From Pelomyxa schiedti (taxonomy: Eukaryota; Protista; Evosea): 48,727 bases of DNA. The notes beneath the pieces were generated by a model, which did not search any database, was not told the DNA's origin, and saw only the letters and a list, made by a program, of their open reading frames with translations. Of the stretch, positions 21,433-32,859 are shown one piece after another. Both the position numbers and the translations under genes were made by a program. The first letter of the stretch is position 1. Each line of letters begins with the position of its first letter. The stretch spans positions 1 to 48,727 of the forward strand of contig JAHLWZ010000915.1 in assembly GCA_020536535.1 (NCBI GenBank). Reading direction: 5' to 3'.

Positions 21433-24226
21433 TCAGGATTGTTTTTGCCGAAGGCGTTTGTAGTCAGCCATAGAAAGTCCCGACGAAACTGGCGCAGCAG
21501 GCGCCGCTGGAGTTGCTGATGACGTGGAATTACCGAGGATTCTGGGGGGAGTTGTTCTGTTCGTAGTGCTAGTCGTCGTAGTCGCTGCTGTTGTGGAAGA
21601 CTCCACCTTGGAAACATCAATGTCCAGTTCAAAGTCGTGAGCTTTCATCATTGATTCTGCGTAGTCTTCCTGCGGAGGAAGTTGTATCAGTGGTTTTGGT
21701 GGCGTAGTTGGAGTTGCCGGAGAAGCTGAGGCCGGTGTGGGTGCAGGAGCAGAAGCCGGTGCCTGTGATTGGGACTGGGGTTGTGCTGGTGTAGTAGTGG
21801 TAGTTGGTTTGGGTGCTTCAGAGGCCGCCGCTGAAGTGGGTGTAGTGGTTGAACTTGTGGGTGTGGCCGCATGGCCTTTGGAACCAGTGGCGGCTTTCTG
21901 CTGCTACGGGGTTTTAGTTCGTTTTTTGGTTCGAGCAGGTTCAGTGACATACCCTGGATTTGGAGCTTGGTGGAACAAAGACTTCAGGAACTGTCTTGCG
22001 CCTTTGACAGGGGTTCAAAGCTCCAGATGATGCGGATCCATCATTTTCAGCAACCTTGCCCATCGTTAGTGCACCAGGATCCCTAATGGTAACACACCAC
22101 AAGGCGCGAGGGCTTCTTTGGATAAAGAATTGCCTCATTCTTCCCTTCTGTTTCTCGTAAATTGGCCAGTTCCATTTGTAGTTGAGTCACCCTGGTTGTA
22201 GTTGATTTCCTTCCTAACTCATTCAAAGTCTAACCTGTTATGGTCCTCGTCCATCTGAGCTTCCTCCAGTTGTGATTGGATGATGGCTGCTTTCTTTATT
22301 GGTTTTGCCTTTTCTTTAGCACGTATTTCCTTGAGACGATAGTCATCCTGGAAAAGGTGTTATGTAGGACACAACACAGAGAAACTTACTTCTGAGTACT
22401 TGTAGGCCTTTGCCCACTGGAGGTTGTCTCTAACATCGCTGAACACTTGTTGGGATAAATATGTAGATTGTACTCTCCTTTCAATAGCATGCCGAGTGAA
22501 AAAATCGTATTCGGTCTGTTTACATTTTAAAGTCGTGTTTGTTGAGCTGTGCCCTTACAGCAGTAAAAGGCTGCTCAGAAATTGAACTAAGTGGAAAAGT
22601 TTTGGATGAGTCACTTTGGCTTGTTTGTAAGACAAGGTGAATATTTGTTTCATAAGTTGGGCCTCGTTTGGATGGATCAAGAGAATATGTTTTGCCCTTG
22701 TGCAATCCTTCATGACAATAAATTCAAATGGCAATAGAAGGTATACCAATAACAACTGCAATACGATAAACTTTTTTATCAAGGTGTATACCCAGAGATA
22801 CCCGAACAAAAGCCTTCTTCACAGCCTTCTCAAAGAAGGGTTCATTTACCCATTTGATGAGAAGGGATCTCCTAGAAAATACATCACAATGGTGCTGTTT
22901 TCATAGAAGTTGTATTTGCTTTATGTTTGAGATATCCATAAGTGTGTGTGCTTGTGTTTGAATATAGCCACTCCATACGGGAGTTGAATTTCTTGCATTT
23001 GTGCCAGAGTCATTATCTGTAAAGTATAAGGCTGGTACATTACTTTCAACTATAAGATCGTACGTCAGGGTCGGTCACTGAGGTAGAAGTCTCGTTGTGA
23101 GGAGGTGACGGCGGGCTGGGAGGTACAATTTCTAACGAAGGTGAGCCAGATTGGTGTGGCGAACTTTGGGGTTCTTTCTGTGAAGTGTAAGATCGAGAAA
23201 TGAACAAGGACTAGTGACTTCTTCAGTATCGCTGCCAACAGTGGTTGTGGTAGTCGTGGAAGTGGAAGTAGTAGAGGAAGAGGAAGAAGTGGAAGAAGAC
23301 TGAGTCGCGGGGTGCTTCTCACTTGAGGAAGTTGCAGTCGATTCAAGTTTTGCTCTTTTTTGTTTAATTGCCTTGAGGGCTGCATCAAAGCTAGCCTCTT
23401 TCCGGGTACGGTCACGCAACTGCCTCTCTGTGTGAAGGTTGGAAAAAGATGTCGAGGGGCTGCTGGGAGTGACCTGTGGCTTTGCTCGGAGTTTTTGGTT
23501 CCACTTTACTTTTGTTAGGTTGGGTGGTTCCACGTCGTTCTGCTCTTATACGTTGCCTTTCCATATTCCGTTTTCTTTGTTCATAGCGTTCTGCCAAAAC
23601 CTGTTCTCTCTTTATCTCAGATAATGAATCCAGGCTACAATAAAGTAAGCAATGGCTAGGGGAAAGTTTGAACAAAGCCGCACTATTTTCTATCCTCTGC
23701 ATCACCCTTTAAGTCATCATCCCACTCATCATGGTAGTCGCCATCACTTTCTGCAGGGTCGTTTTCTTGAGGGGAGCTCGTTCCAGTGCCAGCAGTAGCA
23801 CTGAAGAACAACAAGGGTGAGTGTGCAGGAAGAAAAGTAATGGGCGATTACAGTTTCCGTTTTTTCGTTTTCCTATCGTCCAGAATTTCCCCCTTTGCAA
23901 TATCAACCACAAACCCCCGGGAAAAAGAAAAAAAAGAAAAAAGAAAAAAAAACCCCGAACCTCTTCCACATCACTCGAGGCCTTCTGGCATTCAATAAGA
24001 TTAATAAGTTATGAGAGGACACCATTATACCTTGCTTGGTTCCTCCGGTTTGTCGTGGTGGTGATGGTGATGGTGCCGGTGGTGGTGATGGTGCTTGTCC
24101 GCTGTGTGTGCGGAGAAAAGTGCGTTAGTCTCACGTTTCTTGGGTTGTGTTTGTTTAAGAAGGAAAATAACCCCCGGCGTCTTTCTTCCTGTCCGTAGCG
24201 TCGTTCGGCTTGTTTGTATCAGACAT
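21433..24226 (-). CDS. RTF1: RTF1 (Paf1 complex, Plus-3 domain), multi-exon
   Basis: LSEIKREQVLAERYE (N-terminal conserved motif); Plus-3 LLIKWVNEPFFEKAVKKAFVRVSLG...VYRIA; C-terminal HDFELDID and LSMADYKR. Confidence 0.9.
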
Positions 24227-24627
24227 TTTTTTGCTTTTGTTTCCCAAAATCCAATCACTAGAAGAACTTGGAACGGCCGGCCTCGGGCCCAGGCTTTTTC
24301 CGAGACGAACCCTTGGTGGTGTTTGCGTGGCGTGCAAAGTGAGAGGATTGGGATTCGGTTGCAAGTCATTTGGGGGATTTCTGGTTGATCTATCCCTGTC
24401 CTATTGGGTTGAAGATTTGTGAAATAACCTGAGGGAGTGTAACATCAACGCCGACCGCGATGTAAGCAACAGCGAAAAAATGAAAAACGGACCTCGGAGG
24501 GGATTTCTTGCAGTCAATTTTGAACATTGGTTACCCGAAAATAACATCAAGTACTCGAACCTACAGCTTTGGAAGGGCAGCTTTCCTTTCTTTTTTGCAA
24601 AGATCGCAAAGAAAAGGGAGGACGGGA

Positions 24628-27600
24628 ATGGTGTTGGTTGGGTTGCGTTTGGGCACTTGGGTCTTGTTGGGTTGTTTAGTAGCTGGCTTCCACGGTAATC
24701 TGACCACCCCAAGTTTTTTTCCCCCGTTCTTCAATGCCTTTCACTGTTGGGGGCCTCATACCTATCGATAGCTGCGTCGTCCAGACAGCTGCACTCACGG
24801 ACTACTGTCACTTCGTATGAAGGCGGCGCCGCTTCATATTTCTCGATGGCGTGCACTTCCTCTTGGCCTCTTTCGCGGAATTGCACCCAGTTGGAGGACT
24901 ATGACGGGAACAGACCTTGTGGCGCCATCACACTCGTTTCGCGAGTGGCTATAATTGGGTGGGGAAATGACTCCTCGTGGGGGGAGTCTGCTCAAAATGT
25001 ATTATGGGGGCTGGGTGCTTTCGTGCCTTGCTTCGTGCAATCTGGCCTCAAAGATGAAGTGGACTCTTTCGCCATTATATCCAAATTGATGGAGTCTTCT
25101 CCCCAGGTTGAGACTTACAAGTGTTCTTTGTGTGATTGGTAACAATGGAATTCCAGGTTGTCTTATTATATGGTGCGAGTACAAGTACGATTGCTTCTTT
25201 TCTTGCAGTCTTCTATTCCAAGTGTGTTTGTATTTGGTCAACTGTTATTATCTCATTCTTTTGTAGCTATGTTGGGGTATATACGGAGCTCGGTCCACTC
25301 TATTTTATAGTTTGGTCACAGGCTATGGATTCTATCTTTGCTTGCCTTTCTGTTCTCTTTTCTCCTTTTCCCATCCCAGAGGATTTGCTAGTATATTCCA
25401 TCAATCCCCTAAACACGTCAGCCTTATCTTCAAGCTCTGCCCTTGAAGTTGATCAATGTGATAATGCCAAGGTTGCTTATAAGTGAAAAAACTTATTTTG
25501 TTGATAACATATGTAAAAAAGATCTTGCAACTGCACTTTCTTGACCGTGATTCAGGATTATTCGTTCCCCAGACCGGGTTTGCTGATCAGTTTGTTTCGT
25601 TTATTCAACTTTAGTGTTGACTTTTCTATTAGAGTTGATGCAACCCAGTTAGAAGGTATCCAGATATCTGGATACCCTTTTCTCTTTTGTACCATCGGTG
25701 ACATCTTCAGTATTCTCAATAAGGACGTTGCTACAGCAGTTTTCGCTGGAGTCCAAACTGCTTTTAGGCGGATAAATGCAGAAGGAGGAATTGATGGGAA
25801 AATATTGAGCCTTTTGCTCCTTGGAGATTCTTATTCGGCTGCAAAGACAACCACATGGGCAGCAAGGGTGTGTACATAAAACTAGCATAAACTAGGAATT
25901 CACCTACTTCAGGCTCTCGTCGAGTATCCACAGCTCAGTGGCTTTGTGGGTTCCTTTGGTACCGCTCCTAGTGAGGCTTTAGCTTCGTATTTGAGTACAG
26001 AAGGTCTTGATATACCACTGATTGAACCAATTACTGGAAATGTGAACCTCTACAGACCCCCACTTAACAGGTTTTTGCGCCAACCCCTTTCCAAACCGGA
26101 GTTGAGTCTTCAAAAAGGGTCATCCGCACAGCAAGGACTTGCTACCAACATGAAGCAGCAGCGTGGTCTGCACACTATGCGCGAACAAGATCCAATTCTT
26201 CTCGTTTTGCAGTTTTACGATGGGATAATGCGTTCGGGCAGCAGTTTGAAGAGATGCTTTCCGTCCACTTAGCTGCTGAAGGACTTTCGATCAACACCAT
26301 GGTAAAGTTCCCCCCAGGTATTTGAGAGTACTCTCGGAAAAAAACCATGCTAAACTCTTTAGGCACTACAAACATATACCCATACATTACTTCTCTGATA
26401 AGAGCGGAGCCAAATTATGTTGGTATTATAGCTACCGGCACTGACTGTGCCCTTGTAAGTTTTTTCTATTCCTTACTTTTTTCCCCAACAACCCAAAGGT
26501 AGCAGGTGTACTTGTAAGTTTTTTGTCTTATCCTTTAAATACAAACAAAGCCGCAGGATTCTTTCAAGAAAAATATCACCTACTACATTTCGTCAGGTTT
26601 TCTTCAGTTTACATCCAAATTTACCTAACTGTTTTGTGACCAGTTGTTGGTCAAGTTCTTCCTGACATGTTGCACAAGCTAGATGTACGAGCTTCGTTTG
26701 GTCTAGTCCTCACTCTCTTGTGACATAACGTAACCTTCTATAGTTTTTTCGTCACATGTAATTCCACCAGAAGGGGAGATGCCAGTATCGTTCACTTCAG
26801 CCTTAATGGCAGACTTCGCTGAATTTGCACCTTATGTAATATCAATTGAGTCCAGCCTTAGAGAAGGCTATATAGCTGGCCGGATAATTGCTAGCTCTCT
26901 GTTATATGCAGCAGACAATGGTTTGGGCAGTTATTTATGTATTGTGTAACTCAAATAGGTAAGTTATCTGGATCCTTGCTGCGGGACCTCATTGATGACT
27001 GTGGTGTCTTTAATATCTCTGGATTTTCAATCGGCCCTTTTTCTACTAATTTGAGTGGCTTACGTGATGTTTGGATGACTGGAGTAGATATTCCAAATTC
27101 GAAATATGCGGTTCAACTCCTATCCAGCCTTCTTCTCTTATTTTAAGATTCAAATTAGTCAACTGCGGTGGCCATTGTACATGGCAATGGATCTTGCCCT
27201 CTTATCAGTGTAACCGAGGAATCTCAACCTGCTTCTAAAACACTACTCATTTCTCTTGCTGTTGTTCTTCCAATATGTCTTATTGCACTGGTAGTAACTT
27301 CGGTAGCACTCTTCTGGCTCTGGAGAAGGTTAATTAGTTGTCGCCTTGTAGTTTTCCTTACAATGACAGTAGAGAAAAGTGTCCCGAGCAGGGGATACCA
27401 CGACAACAGCTTTCAGCTTTTATTCAGAAGAATAGATTAGCCTTATCAAGGGTTGTGGCTTGTATTGTTGCAATAGTTGGTATCCTTATTGTTGTGCTGG
27501 TTCGTATTTTTTTATATTTTACCTTTTGCCTTATCAACTCCAAGTTATTCTTTGGTATTTCTCTGAGCACCACAAAAAAAGGTAATATTGAAATGGTAGT

Positions 27601-30575
27601 CCTCAGATTAATTCTCCTAGGTGTTACATCAACCATACCCCTGCTATTCAATCAGACGACCTTTAGGTACTTGCCTTTTTTTGCAATTGAAAATAAAACG
27701 TTTTAGAGTGCGCGACTTCATGGACATGTCCCTGAACAAACCACAAATGGCTACAGTGCAAATTGCTCAGTCAGTAGAAAGTTTCAATATTTCTCTTGGA
27801 AAGAACACCTGGACAGATTGGGCACTGTTCCTTTCTAATCAGATTTCAGTTCTAGGAAATTCAACACAAATGTATTTCTCCTTATATGCCAGAAGATTGG
27901 TCACTAAGGTGAGTAGGATATACTTTGGATTGAACTCTGGGGAATTGGTCGGTGCTACTAAAGGAGGAATGATTTCTTCCTGTGTTTATGGGGTATGCTA
28001 CTGGCCAATACAAGAGGATATTGTAAGTAAGCCTTGGGTTTTTCTCCTCCCTGAGAACTTGTGAGGTCATTGGATATCCAGCCCCAAGTGCAATCCTTTT
28101 AAATGACTCTTCCTATGACTGTCGGTGGAAATCTTGGTGGCTTCTGGCCAGTTTATCGGGTATTCCAACTTGGTCTGGAGGTGATTCAGTTTCGTTGACT
28201 GTGAGCTTTGCCACCCCTGTTGTTGATGAGTCCACGAGTTCCACTTACGCAGTTTTTGGGGTTGAGTGAGTGTTCCCCTTTTTCCTTCCTCTTTCACTTG
28301 CAACAAGAATTTCACTCGGAATTATGCAAAATCTTCTTTCTGAATTGCCACTCACAGAAAGAACCATAGTGCTAATAACAGAAGAAGATGGATCTATGTT
28401 GATATCAAATAAAGCAGAGAGCAGTGGGGACACGGTTAAAGCAAACATTCTTCTAAGTAGTGATTCGACAATTGCCTGTGTTGCTGAGAATTTCAATCTT
28501 CAGCTTCAACAAAACCCCTCAAAGGTACACCTTCAATCAAAATTTTTTCCCAACCTCCTTTCTTTCACAGGCGTTTGTTACCAATTCGACTGAGCCAATT
28601 ATAGCTACCTTTACCTGCCATGGGGAAACAATTCTAGCCAGTTTATACAATTGGGTGGATTCCTTCAATTATGTGTTTGTAATTATCATAGCTACCCCAG
28701 GTCTTTTTTTTTTTTTTTTTGGTGTGTTTACTGAAATCTATTCATTAAAAACACAGAGAAAGATTTTACGGAGGAATACACACACTCTTTGAAAGTTTTG
28801 CTTGGTACCGCTTTGACTGTATTATTTGCTGTTGCTCTTCTCACTGTGGGCGCCTTGCTGCTATTCACCAGAGTGTATGGACGTATAGCTGTTCAGGACT
28901 CTAATGTCAACGACCAGGCAAATGTGGACTCAGGTTTGCTTCCTAATAACTACGTGAGGAATAACACTGGACAGGGCTACAACAGGTTATTAAGCAACTT
29001 CGAAGTGTGAAGGAAGGAATAAAAGACCATAATTTATCATCGACTTTGGATGCCGTTATAGAAAAACTCACTGAGACAAAAAGGTTCACTGTTTGGGTTA
29101 AAGGGACTCCCCTTACTGTGTAAATAGTCTATATCTTCCCGACCTTCACAACATCTCCAATGATAAAGAGACAAATGCTTGGATTAATGAAGAATTTATT
29201 ACAAAGGAGGCCCATCCTGTACAAAGGTATCGCGATATATTAGAATCTAGTCGTTTGACAGTCTTGTTAGGGGTATTTCACCATGGAATCGGAACTCACC
29301 CCGTACCGTTGAGCGGTCTGATAGTCTTTTACGTCGAACAGATCAGTGGAATTTTAATGTTAACCTGTTGTCTAACTGTTCCAACCTGATGCTCCTAAGG
29401 TTTTTGAACTTGGCGCCAAGACGGACCACACTCTTGTGGACTGTTTCTTTTCAATTTTGAAAGCAAGAAACATTTTGCAGGCTGTACACCTGGAACCCCA
29501 AAGCCTTGAGTACTGTTTCTCCATTGTAAGTCTTTTTCCTTAATTCCCTCAGAAATTTGTTGGTGCAACTTGAGGCGCTCTATATTAAGACGCCATATCA
29601 CAATGTGTTTCATGCCACTGATGTACGTTTGGACATTTATTAATCGTTAATCTAAGGTTCACCAGGTTTTGCAGTGTATGCACTATTTCTTGTCTTCCTC
29701 ACTTGTGGAAAAACTCAATCTCACACCTTTGGAAGTAATTTCCTTCAACTTTCTTTTATTGTGTTAAATAGTGCAAGCAACTTGCAATTTTCATTGCCGC
29801 AGCAGCTCATGATGTGGGTCATGACGGCAGAAATAATGCCTTTCATGTGGCAACATGCAGTGAGCGGGCTCTCCGTTTCAATTTTGTATCCGTGCAGGAA
29901 AACTATCACGCGAACACGACACTCAAACTGGCTTTTGACCTCTTCCTATTTAAGAAGCTAACAGCAGAGGAAGCACACAGCTTACGAACAATTATAGTTG
30001 ATCTGGTAAACTGCTCAATTCCTTTTTTTTTTTTTTTATAAGCACTGAGTTTGACACAAGATATTAGCAACTGACATGACCCAACACTTTTCGTTTCTTG
30101 GAAAATTCTCCACTCGACTGGAAAGTAACAACTTTGCACCACAAGATTCAGATAAACTACTTATCCTTCAAATGCTATTAAAGGCTGCGGATATATCCAA
30201 CGCCTCCAGGTAGTCATAACTTTATCTTCACACAGTTAATTCAGAACAGACCATTCGAAATTATGGCAAAATGGAGCACCAAAGTTATTGAAGAGTTTTT
30301 CTTACAAGGGGATGAAGAAAGGTCACTGTCTTTGCCCATTTCTCCCTTTATGGACAGAGAAAATTCCAATCCAATTAAAAGCCAACAGGTAACAACTGCA
30401 GCTTGTTCTCGAAAATACATTCACTCACATACAATAGGGCTTTATCTCGTTCATTGTAAAACCCCTCTATGAAGCCATTGCCAAATTTGCCCCTGAAGTA
30501 GTGGCTCTTCCACTCAAACATCTAGAAGATAACCTGAAGTTCTGGAAAGAGACCACAACTTGGCCCAGCGTTTGA
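24628..30575 (+). CDS. Multi-pass receptor-like class I cyclic-nucleotide phosphodiesterase (signal peptide, PBP1/Venus flytrap, TM, TM, dCache, TM, PDEase_I), multi-exon
   Basis: PBP1: AGVQTAFRRINAEGGIDGKILSLLLLGDSY, FVGSFGT, PLIEPITG, TCYQHEA, DNAFG. TMs at about 27240-27330, 27445-27510 and 28790-28870. Cache: IYFG..SGELVG, YDCRWKSWW..A...PTWS...TVSFATPV...VFGVE|ISL. PDE: TPYHNVFHATDV, AAHDVGHDGRNNAF, SVQENYH, LATDM, KAADISN, EEFFLQGDEE, KSQ|GFI. Confidence 0.8.
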
Positions 30576-30739: not shown

Positions 30740-32859
30740 ATGGCCGTGATACCTATTTCGGTTCCCATAGTTTGTTGTGGTGCAGTGTTGTTCTGTGGGT
30801 ACTGGGCGTACGGCGGGCTGTCTTGGTACATCGTGATGTCAATGAGGCCTTTTTTCCCATCCAAGGGCGAAGTGGAGCGTGTAACTCCGGCAAAAAAATT
30901 CTCGGACGGAATGGACTTTGTACCTGCAAGGCTTCCGTTGTTAATGGCTCAACATTTCTCCACGGTTTTTTTTTTTCCCCCTCCGTCTTATTTTTTTCAA
31001 AATGAAGACTGATTAAAATCATTACATTTCTAGATTGCTGCTGCTGGCCCGATTTTGGGTCCCACTCTTGCTGCTATCTATTTTGGTTGGGTTAGTTCGT
31101 TTCCTCCTGAATAGGCATCAAAATGACTAACTTCTTTTAGCTCCCTACTCTCTTGTGGTTGATATTCGGCTCTATTTTTATTGGTGGAGTGCACGACTTC
31201 ATTGCTTTGGTTGCGTCAGTGAGATATGACGCAAAGTCCATTGCCCATGTTGCCGGGTATCAACCCCATCTCTGGCACTAGTTTCTTATCATTCATATGT
31301 GATAAAGTATTATCTAATTCCAGGGAAATACAGTGAGTGTATGAGCAAAAGAGCCAGAATACTTGTTCTACTCTATACTGAAATATCCTTAGTCTATGTA
31401 ATTATAGCTTTTGCGGATGTGACAGCTGGAGCCTTTGTGCAGGTTGGTACTGAGCTTGATCCAGGTACCAAATTGTTTTCTTTAAGTGTCGTCTTAAACC
31501 TTTTTCAATTCAGATGATCAGGTGGGAGCTAAGGCTGGTAGCTCTTCCTGTATGTACCTTGCAGTAGGACTTGCAATGGGCATTGTGATGAAACTACTTC
31601 CAAAGGCTAAACTTTGGATGCTCACTCCTCCTTTTTTGATCCTTGTGATTGGAACTATTGTTGCTGGTGAGTATGCACCCCTACCATTAAACCAGCGTAC
31701 ATGGGACATGTTGCTGCTGTCATATTGCTGGTTTGCAGCTATTGCTCCAGCTTGGTTGTTATTACAACCAAGAGGTTACCTTGGTGGATTTTTTTTGTAT
31801 ACCACTCTTGTTGGCATATGCCTGGGAATAACTGTATCACTCTTCACCAGCGATGTTGGCTTTCCGATTGAGTTCCCCGCATGGCGAGGCTATGGTGAAC
31901 CGCCTATGCAGTTATTCCCAGTGCTCTTTATCACTGTGGCATGTGGCGCCTGCTCTGGATTTCATGCGGTAGTTTCTTCTGGGACCACAGCAAAACAGCT
32001 TTCAAGAGAAAGAGATGCACTACCGGTTTCTTATGGAGCTATGTTGCTGGAGAGCTTTGTGGCTGTCTTGAGCTGCTCTACAATAATGATTATGAGCGAA
32101 GACGATCCCCTTATACAGAAAGCTGACGCACAGGCATGCTATGCCAGAGGAGTATCTTCCTACTTATATGTAATTGGAAAACCGCTACACATCCCCTTGA
32201 GTTTGTTGTATAACTTTGCCATGATGGCGTTTGCCACGTTTGTTTGTGATACTCTTGATGTAGCCACTCGGCTGGGAAGAATTGTACTACAGGAACTTAT
32301 ACCTTGGAAACCAAAAACGCGAGTTACACAAGCTATTTGGCACCTCTGTTGCACCACATCAGTATTAGTTCTACCATTTCTCATACTGGGATTTTCACCG
32401 ACAATGGTGGACCCCAAAACCGGCGCCATTATCCCACTGTGGAGAAGTATGTGGGGGCTCTTTGGATCCTGCAATCAACTATTTGCTGCATTGGTACTAC
32501 TGATAGGCTCAGCCTGGCTTGCCAGCAAGGGGAAAAAGTGGGCTTTATCTGGAATACCCATGCTTATAATGTTCACAGTGGCCACTGTGGCTTTGATCGA
32601 AACAAGTGTATCCTGGATTCAAGGATTTTCCACAGCCGGAGCGGCTGGTCACTTGGTTGGTGTGTGCAGCACACTTATGCTTATACTGTGTGCATTTTTC
32701 GTGTTTGAGGCTTGTGCTTCTTTGGGCACCTATGTACTCCCCTCATATGTTCTGAGAAAGCTATCTTCATTCCGCGATTCTATGCTTGCCAAATTCCACA
32801 AACTCAAGGAAGACCCAGAAGATGTCATTGGTGCCCCAATGGACCAACTCTCCTCCTGA
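30740..32859 (+). CDS. cstA: Carbon starvation protein A (CstA)-family peptide/pyruvate transporter with 4 spliceosomal introns
   Basis: [14 protein letters not shown]...AQHFST|[10 protein letters not shown]...FGW|[20 protein letters not shown]; LLQPRGYL; [18 protein letters not shown]; [11 protein letters not shown]; [11 protein letters not shown]; [10 protein letters not shown]. Introns at about 30965-31033, 31091-31140, 31258-31333 and 31465-31514. Confidence 0.92.

Follow-up and report, generated by a model that had tools for sequence, protein, structure and literature searches.

We analysed a stretch of 48,727 nucleotides from the anaerobic amoeba Pelomyxa schiedti (contig JAHLWZ010000915.1 of assembly GCA_020536535.1; the whole stretch is called the window below, and positions are counted from its first letter), and describe a gene on its plus strand, at 24628-30575, that links predicted extracellular sensor domains to a class I cyclic-nucleotide phosphodiesterase (PDE). 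We searched 1.84 billion representative proteins with the PDE exon 29772-30005 and found it 99% identical to KAH3744526.1 (P0001; P. schiedti, 1297 residues), which sits on this same contig and carries in GenBank only the generic name "3'5'-cyclic nucleotide phosphodiesterase". Read straight and without splicing, 24628-30575 contains no long open frame; it is filled by short exons and by GT-AG introns of mostly about 40-50 nt. The gene model was built by hand curation and then compared with KAH3744526.1 and with proteins of Mastigella eilhardi, a member of the same order (Pelobiontida). It has 33 exons on the plus strand and encodes 1477 residues, from the ATG at 24628 to a stop codon reached by 30575. 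The order of domains is signal peptide, N-terminal domain, type I periplasmic binding protein (PBP1) domain, first transmembrane segment (TM1), basic loop, TM2, double-Cache (dCache) domain, TM3, helical linker and class I PDE, as listed here.

24628-24694, plus strand: exon 1, with the start codon and a predicted signal peptide (MVLVGLRLGTWVLLGCLVAGFH); hydropathy peak 2.03 over residues 1-19
24772-25642, plus strand: N-terminal ectodomain, fold unassigned; exons 24772-25106, 25157-25221, 25267-25471, 25522-25589 and the first bases of 25633-25867
25643-27221, plus strand: PBP1/Venus-flytrap ectodomain of the Peripla_BP_6 type, 9 exons; from Pfam, PDB sequence matches and Foldseek
27234-27314, plus strand: TM1 (TLLISLAVVLPICLIALVV...); hydropathy peak 2.95, with a Mastigella TM segment at the equivalent alignment position
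27315-27451, plus strand: short basic loop, predicted cytoplasmic; 7 K+R vs 2 D+E in 32 residues, holding intron 27329-27369
27452-27565, plus strand: TM2 (VVACIVAIVGILIVVLLFF); hydropathy peak 3.47, split by the in-frame intron 27500-27544
27566-28788, plus strand: double-Cache-like ectodomain, about 300 residues in 7 exons; from a profile search of the PDB, Foldseek and sub-threshold Pfam matches
28798-28866, plus strand: TM3 (ALTVLFAVALLTVGALLLF); hydropathy peak 2.64, followed by a conserved LFTRxYxRIAxQ
28867-29556, plus strand: helical linker of about 160 residues, predicted cytoplasmic; conserved with Mastigella
29557-30575, plus strand: class I cyclic-nucleotide PDE catalytic domain (to 30572) and stop codon; from PDEase_I and an alignment to PDE4

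The introns of this model measure 38-96 nt with a median of 44.5 nt (30 of the 32 lie within 38-56 nt), and a GTT donor, instead of GTA or GTG, was present in 12 of the 31 introns that were read out. Three introns, at 27500-27544, 27582-27620 and 27872-27916, keep the reading frame open, without a stop codon, and are therefore readily mistaken for coding sequence. Gene models made by dynamic programming retained intron sequence or missed real exons, because codon bias in 24628-30575 is too weak, and were replaced by the hand-curated one. The published annotation of the genome consists of Augustus predictions that were improved with PASA/EVM and single-cell transcriptomes, and 7.4 introns per gene are reported (PMC8887013). 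KAH3744526.1 maps exactly onto 31 exons between 25145 and 30575, and its splicing matches Mastigella at about seven junctions, including three in-frame introns and intron 26071-26117. After removal of 27500-27544, TM2 has the same length as in Mastigella.

At its 5' end, KAH3744526.1 looks truncated or mis-built. Its ATG at 25145 falls in the predicted intron 25107-25156, and it splices out 25184-25381, a stretch that is conserved with Mastigella; in our model, residues 124-193 align with residues 27-97 of the Mastigella protein P0007 (32% identity over 71 residues, E-value 1e-7), and identity to the Mastigella protein P0006 is 46% over 41 residues. The hand-curated model starts upstream of this, with a hydrophobic stretch of 22 residues after the ATG at 24628 (Kyte-Doolittle peak 2.03), and the GT-AG intron 24695-24771 links exon 1 in frame to exon 2. 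We consider 24628 the likely true start. Exon 2 (24772-25106) as coding sequence is weakly supported, the support being limited to the need for a signal peptide and to the junction between exons 2 and 3, where S-S-P-Q|V-V-L-L-Y in Pelomyxa faces S-L-P-Q-V-V-V-L-F in Mastigella (S-x-P-Q-V-V). Its open frame of 147 codons was matched in 7.5% of dinucleotide shuffles (p=0.075, not significant), the similarity to the N-terminus of P0007 was not significant either (p=0.69), and the first 100 residues of the exon had no significant support.

The PBP half and the Cache-PDE half of the gene are joined across intron 27329-27369 (41 nt), which lies between TM1 and TM2, and this junction is used alike in the GenBank model and in the hand-curated model. 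Retention of this intron would end frame 0 at 27438, and the Cache-PDE half has no ATG ahead of TM2, so that the shared splice argues for one gene. For a single messenger carrying PBP, Cache and PDE, the strongest evidence is cDNA of the relative Mastigella. Three open reading frames (ORFs) from Trinity transcripts of Mastigella eilhardi (EukProt EP01105), namely P0006 with 1452 residues, its isoform P0151 and P0007 with 1491 residues, are colinear with the Pelomyxa protein from the N-terminal domain to the C-terminus at 35% identity, and run through TM1, the basic loop and TM2. P0151 additionally has an in-frame insert of 18 residues, beginning with V and ending with Q, exactly opposite the P. 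schiedti intron 30006-30060. The likeliest interpretation of the insert is an intron that was retained, and the position of this intron would thus be common to both genera. P0008, a fourth ORF from Mastigella, is truncated on its 5' side within the Cache domain.

The PDE domains were also placed in a tree of 78 sequences (80 domains had been found, of which two did not enter it; P0151, P0152, P0153 and P0155 had been omitted beforehand as isoforms, fragments or cluster members), in which the PBP-bearing proteins of Pelomyxa and Mastigella formed one clade with an SH-aLRT support of 100. As the architecture is conserved in both genera, it predates the split between them. When 14 of the 150 nearest PDE sequences were scanned with Pfam, Peripla_BP_6 was present only in the proteins of Pelomyxa and Mastigella, and a PBP profile built here gave no further match among all 150. 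A metagenome scan with the PBP alignment recovered only PBP relatives, at 22-37% identity, none with similarity to the Cache domain, the linker or the PDE adjacent to it. At one of these metagenome loci, an ORF of 386 residues was followed by two ORFs of similar size.

For the PBP1 domain, Peripla_BP_6 (PF13458) scored well above its Pfam cut-off of 31.7 bits in P0001 (63 bits, E-value 4.9e-17) and was also matched in Mastigella by P0006 (E-value 9.5e-29, profile positions 16-338 of 343) and by P0007 (E-value 8.8e-20). Of its motifs, RINAEGGIDG is encoded in exon 25633-25867, VGSFGT in exon 25913-26070 and DNAFG in exon 26118-26317. All 15 matches to solved structures were bacterial type I binding proteins of the HAAT type, the best being 3lop (E-value 4.2e-9), and no match to ANF_receptor was found in the Pfam scan. 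When single exons were scanned with Pfam, the PBP signal was too weak and the Cache region gave no hit. In the AlphaFold model of the domain (pLDDT 44.8) the alternation of strands and helices fits a PBP1 fold, and the top 50 Foldseek matches were all PBP1 folds, with TM-scores of about 0.2. The N-terminal ectodomain in front of it resembles a PBP at the level of motifs only (PQVVLLYGASTSTIASFLAVFY compared with YPQLSGFVGSFGTAPSEALASYL; i-E-value 0.034 for the match in P0007), and comparison of this region with PBPs by hhalign gave a probability of 0.3% and an E-value of 0.2.

The ectodomain between TM2 and TM3 was assigned with profiles. A profile of four sequences, searched against the PDB, gave dCache sensors as all ten best matches, with E-values from 2.4e-6 to 0.018; the best was 3c8c, and the matches included Mlp24/Mlp37, a dCache diguanylate cyclase, CtaA and PctA. 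With a wider profile a bacterial dCache histidine kinase was matched among 5.8 billion sequences (E-value 3.2e-5), and word-based sequence searches recovered only KAH3744526.1 itself and one bacterial dCache kinase. Foldseek with the AlphaFold model of this domain (pLDDT 50) returned essentially only dCache domains, the best being Mlp24, PscC and PctA/B at E-values of about 1e-5. The models of both ectodomains are poor because each alignment held only 3-4 sequences, and we take the Foldseek results for both as agreeing with the sequence evidence and not as independent proof. Four cysteines in the dCache domain are invariant. The dCache_1AA motif, attributed to Gumerov et al. 2022, reportedly consists of Tyr/Arg/Trp and Tyr/Tyr/Asp, which are said to hold the carboxyl and amino groups of amino acids. 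Three of the six positions could be read, from the sequences and from a single HMMER alignment with Mlp24; in place of the Arg of RPWY the three species have Lys, Thr or Ala, WS stands opposite the Tyr of APY, and the Trp is kept.

In the PDE domain, PDEase_I (PF00233) was matched with an E-value of 1.6e-74 and 251 bits, compared to a cut-off of 24.8, over profile positions 1-234 of 238, and the matches were colinear over four exons. Similarity to PDE4-type structures reached E-values of 1e-52 to 1e-54, and PDE4D was matched with an E-value of 1e-51. The motifs YHNVFHATDV, HDVGHDG, ILATDM, KAADISN and KSQQGF contain the metal-binding set of His and Asp residues and the purine-recognising Gln, identical to those of the PDE4-type structures 6ezu and 1oyn, and the metal-binding residues and the Gln are invariant in four archamoebal sequences. 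The catalytic site is intact, and the enzyme is predicted to hydrolyse cyclic AMP or cyclic GMP (cAMP/cGMP). A profile of the helical linker also matched the region preceding the PDE in other archamoebal PDEs (P0008, P0003, P0124 and P0013).

With the positive-inside rule applied to the three TM segments and the basic loop, the PBP and dCache domains are predicted to lie outside and the PDE in the cytoplasm. The loop residues R497, P506, F513, K516, L519 and R523 are invariant with Mastigella, TRVYGR follows TM3, and 13 N-x-S/T sites are present in the regions assigned to the outside. Most of what an earlier note had proposed from the letters of this stretch was borne out by these comparisons. 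The signal peptide and the three TM segments are where it had placed them once the short introns are removed (the signal-peptide exon as a prediction only), the PBP1 domain is of the bacterial type by a score above the Pfam cut-off on the full-length protein, the class I PDE has all its catalytic motifs, and the single gene it assumed agrees with the TM1/TM2 splice and with the full-length transcript ORFs of Mastigella. Two of its calls stood in part. The dCache-like domain is similar to solved bacterial dCache domains, with a Pfam score that falls short. A suggested second PBP-like region at 24770-25450 is coding at least in part, 25157-25471 being conserved with Mastigella; its PBP nature was not established.

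On balance, we favour the reading that 24628-30575 is a single nuclear gene for a three-pass membrane chemoreceptor-PDE, in which the PBP docks on a dCache relay. The PBP would capture a ligand, and the closed PBP would dock on the dCache domain, by analogy with LuxP and LuxQ of Vibrio. In that system, which responds to autoinducer-2, a type I periplasmic binding protein acts on a membrane protein with a tandem PAS/Cache-like domain that relays via a TM helix. LuxP-LuxQ differs in being bacterial, in consisting of two polypeptides and in its histidine-kinase output, whereas the Pelomyxa protein is one chain joined through a TM hairpin, with a eukaryotic PDE and a docking that is presumed by analogy. 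The dCache domain would then be a relay and not a second independent ligand site, which is in line with the Arg and Tyr that are not kept among the three motif positions read. A conformational change of the ectodomains would reach the PDE, probably a dimer, by way of TM3 and the linker helices, and the output of the receptor would be the breakdown of cyclic nucleotide. Rhodopsin-PDEs and receptor cyclases are thought to signal by such transmission from sensor to enzyme.

The TM hairpin would be what remains of a fusion in which a membrane-anchored binding protein was joined to a TM-Cache-TM-PDE receptor. The Pelomyxa gene looks like such a fusion, with a PBP placed before the receptor, because a form lacking the PBP exists in Mastigamoeba balamuthi. 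This protein, P0124, has a TM segment (13-31), a weak dCache_1 match, a second TM segment (360-378) and a PDE. It resembles the back half of the Pelomyxa protein in its basic N-terminal tail or loop, TM segment, Cache-like ectodomain, TM segment, conserved linker and PDE; it differs in having no signal peptide, N-terminal domain, PBP1 or TM1, and its PDE falls outside the PBP-bearing clade. The architecture of P0124 is likely the parent form. The basic N-termini of P0124 and of P0003, also from M. balamuthi, resemble the loop before TM2 of the Pelomyxa gene. Docking of a tethered PBP in the manner of LuxP and LuxQ is favoured since fused proteins are often former partners. We propose tentatively, as a possibility that we would rate somewhat below even chances, a Rosetta-stone fusion in which a solute-binding protein and its cognate dCache receptor of the LuxP/LuxQ kind were joined in the ancestor of Pelomyxa and Mastigella, giving the first described eukaryotic chemoreceptor that directly destroys cAMP/cGMP.

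Several points weigh against the receptor as drawn here. Exon 1, which encodes the signal peptide, is absent from the GenBank model and has no homolog to back it; this exon and most of exon 2 are placed by splice logic alone. The Mastigella ORFs have no signal peptide, though they are probably cut at the 5' end. The topology was derived from hydropathy and the positive-inside rule. In the dCache region, the matches to dCache_1 (PF02743) in P0001 (25.3 bits, E-value 1.3e-5) and in P0007 (27.8 bits, E-value 2.3e-6) are both below the Pfam cut-off of 45. The models of the dCache and PBP domains are of low confidence (pLDDT 50 and 45), and their fold matches, though at Foldseek E-values of about 1e-5 to 1e-7, have low TM-scores.

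The comparison of the earlier note with a mirror image of a receptor cyclase is fair for the architecture, as both sensors are predicted outside and an intact class I PDE inside. Its further claim of two extracellular ligands was not established; the dCache domain lacks the Arg and Tyr of the amino-acid motif at the positions read and may instead be the docking partner of the PBP. A receptor with two inputs, in which PBP1 and dCache bind different extracellular small molecules and the PDE integrates both, is in our view unlikely, though it deserves some weight. Both domain families bind small molecules in most characterised cases, the nearest solved dCache relatives are ligand-binding chemoreceptor domains, and the nearest solved PBP relatives are amino-acid and aromatic-acid binding proteins. 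Besides the motif positions, what speaks against two inputs is the TM hairpin, which suggests the fusion of two once-separate membrane proteins, and fused partners usually interact. It is also conceivable, and we think improbable, that the ectodomains do not regulate the enzyme at all and anchor, target or cluster a constitutively active PDE, perhaps where the cell feeds or adheres, or are decayed relics. P. schiedti has a shorter N-terminal domain than Mastigella, one that looks degenerate, and in rhodopsin-PDEs the sensor was reported to exert little control over the enzyme (PMC12004702). However, the PBP, dCache, TM segments and linker are conserved over their full length across two genera at about 35% identity, with many invariant residues, including the four dCache cysteines, and such whole-length conservation argues for selection on the ectodomains.

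An artefact of annotation, by which two head-to-tail genes, one for a membrane-anchored PBP and one for a TM-Cache-TM-PDE protein, were wrongly joined, is largely refuted and seems to us most improbable. PBP-less TM-Cache-TM-PDE genes do exist in Mastigamoeba, and GTTAAT, the donor of the junction intron 27329-27369, looks weak. But GTT donors are frequent in the gene, and one of them, in an intron that starts with GTTAAC, restores the PDE hallmark WNFN|VFEL, a junction proven by homology. Moreover, the downstream half has no ATG, only about 120 nt separate TM1 from TM2, and the three Mastigella transcript ORFs run across the equivalent junction.

Among known systems, the proposed Pelomyxa receptor belongs with the modular receptor enzymes, and the new element is a PBP1 module joined by a TM hairpin to a dCache-PDE. 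In choanoflagellate rhodopsin-PDE (Rh-PDE), a single polypeptide likewise runs from an N-terminal membrane sensor through a helical linker to a cytoplasmic class I PDE at the C-terminus. Its sensor is a light-driven multi-pass rhodopsin, in contrast to the predicted extracellular sensors (PBP1 and dCache) and three TM segments of Pelomyxa, and no homology between the two proteins was seen outside the PDE domain. In receptor guanylyl and adenylyl cyclases, of the animal ANP receptor type and of trypanosomatids (the trypanosome receptor adenylate cyclases are covered in PMC6027212), a PBP1 ectodomain is linked through the membrane to an enzyme of cyclic-nucleotide metabolism. Unlike the Pelomyxa protein, these make the messenger, have a single TM segment and have no Cache domain, and the Pelomyxa PBP scores as bacterial Peripla_BP_6. 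Bacterial c-di-GMP PDEs linked to Cache or PBP domains and tandem Venus-flytrap kinases of the BvgS type resemble it in that extracytoplasmic sensors drive an enzyme that degrades a second messenger or signals (PMC8846402); they are prokaryotic, and their output is EAL, HD-GYP or a histidine kinase instead of a class I PDE.

A literature search for receptor-type or transmembrane PDEs gave rhodopsin-PDEs as the only fusions of a sensor to a PDE, and a search for Cache or periplasmic binding protein together with cyclic-nucleotide PDE returned nothing beyond studies of c-di-GMP in bacteria and of receptor cyclases in trypanosomes. Class I PDEs are classically controlled by intracellular GAF, PAS, UCR, calmodulin or receiver domains. 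If the proposed receptor is real, cells could lower cyclic nucleotide directly from a surface receptor, which would complete the symmetry with receptor cyclases and hint at how free-living anaerobic amoebae sense dissolved nutrients. It might also serve as a template for ligand-gated PDE tools beside the optogenetic ones, and the conserved TM hairpin offers a testable example in which two signalling partners became one chain.

A further archamoebal case in which a PDE is paired with a solute-binding-like domain may be P0018 of Mastigamoeba balamuthi (1250 residues), which has a signal-peptide-like start, NMT1/THI5-like domains, which we take to be of the type II solute-binding fold, and PDEase_I; its topology is odd, and the gene model may be wrong. 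At the Pelomyxa locus, the 918 bp upstream of the GenBank start (24227-25144) are without an annotated gene, and the neighbouring genes are as follows.

21433-24226, minus strand: gene with a Plus-3 domain, the upstream neighbour, transcribed divergently
31341-32859, plus strand: CstA transporter gene with introns, the downstream neighbour

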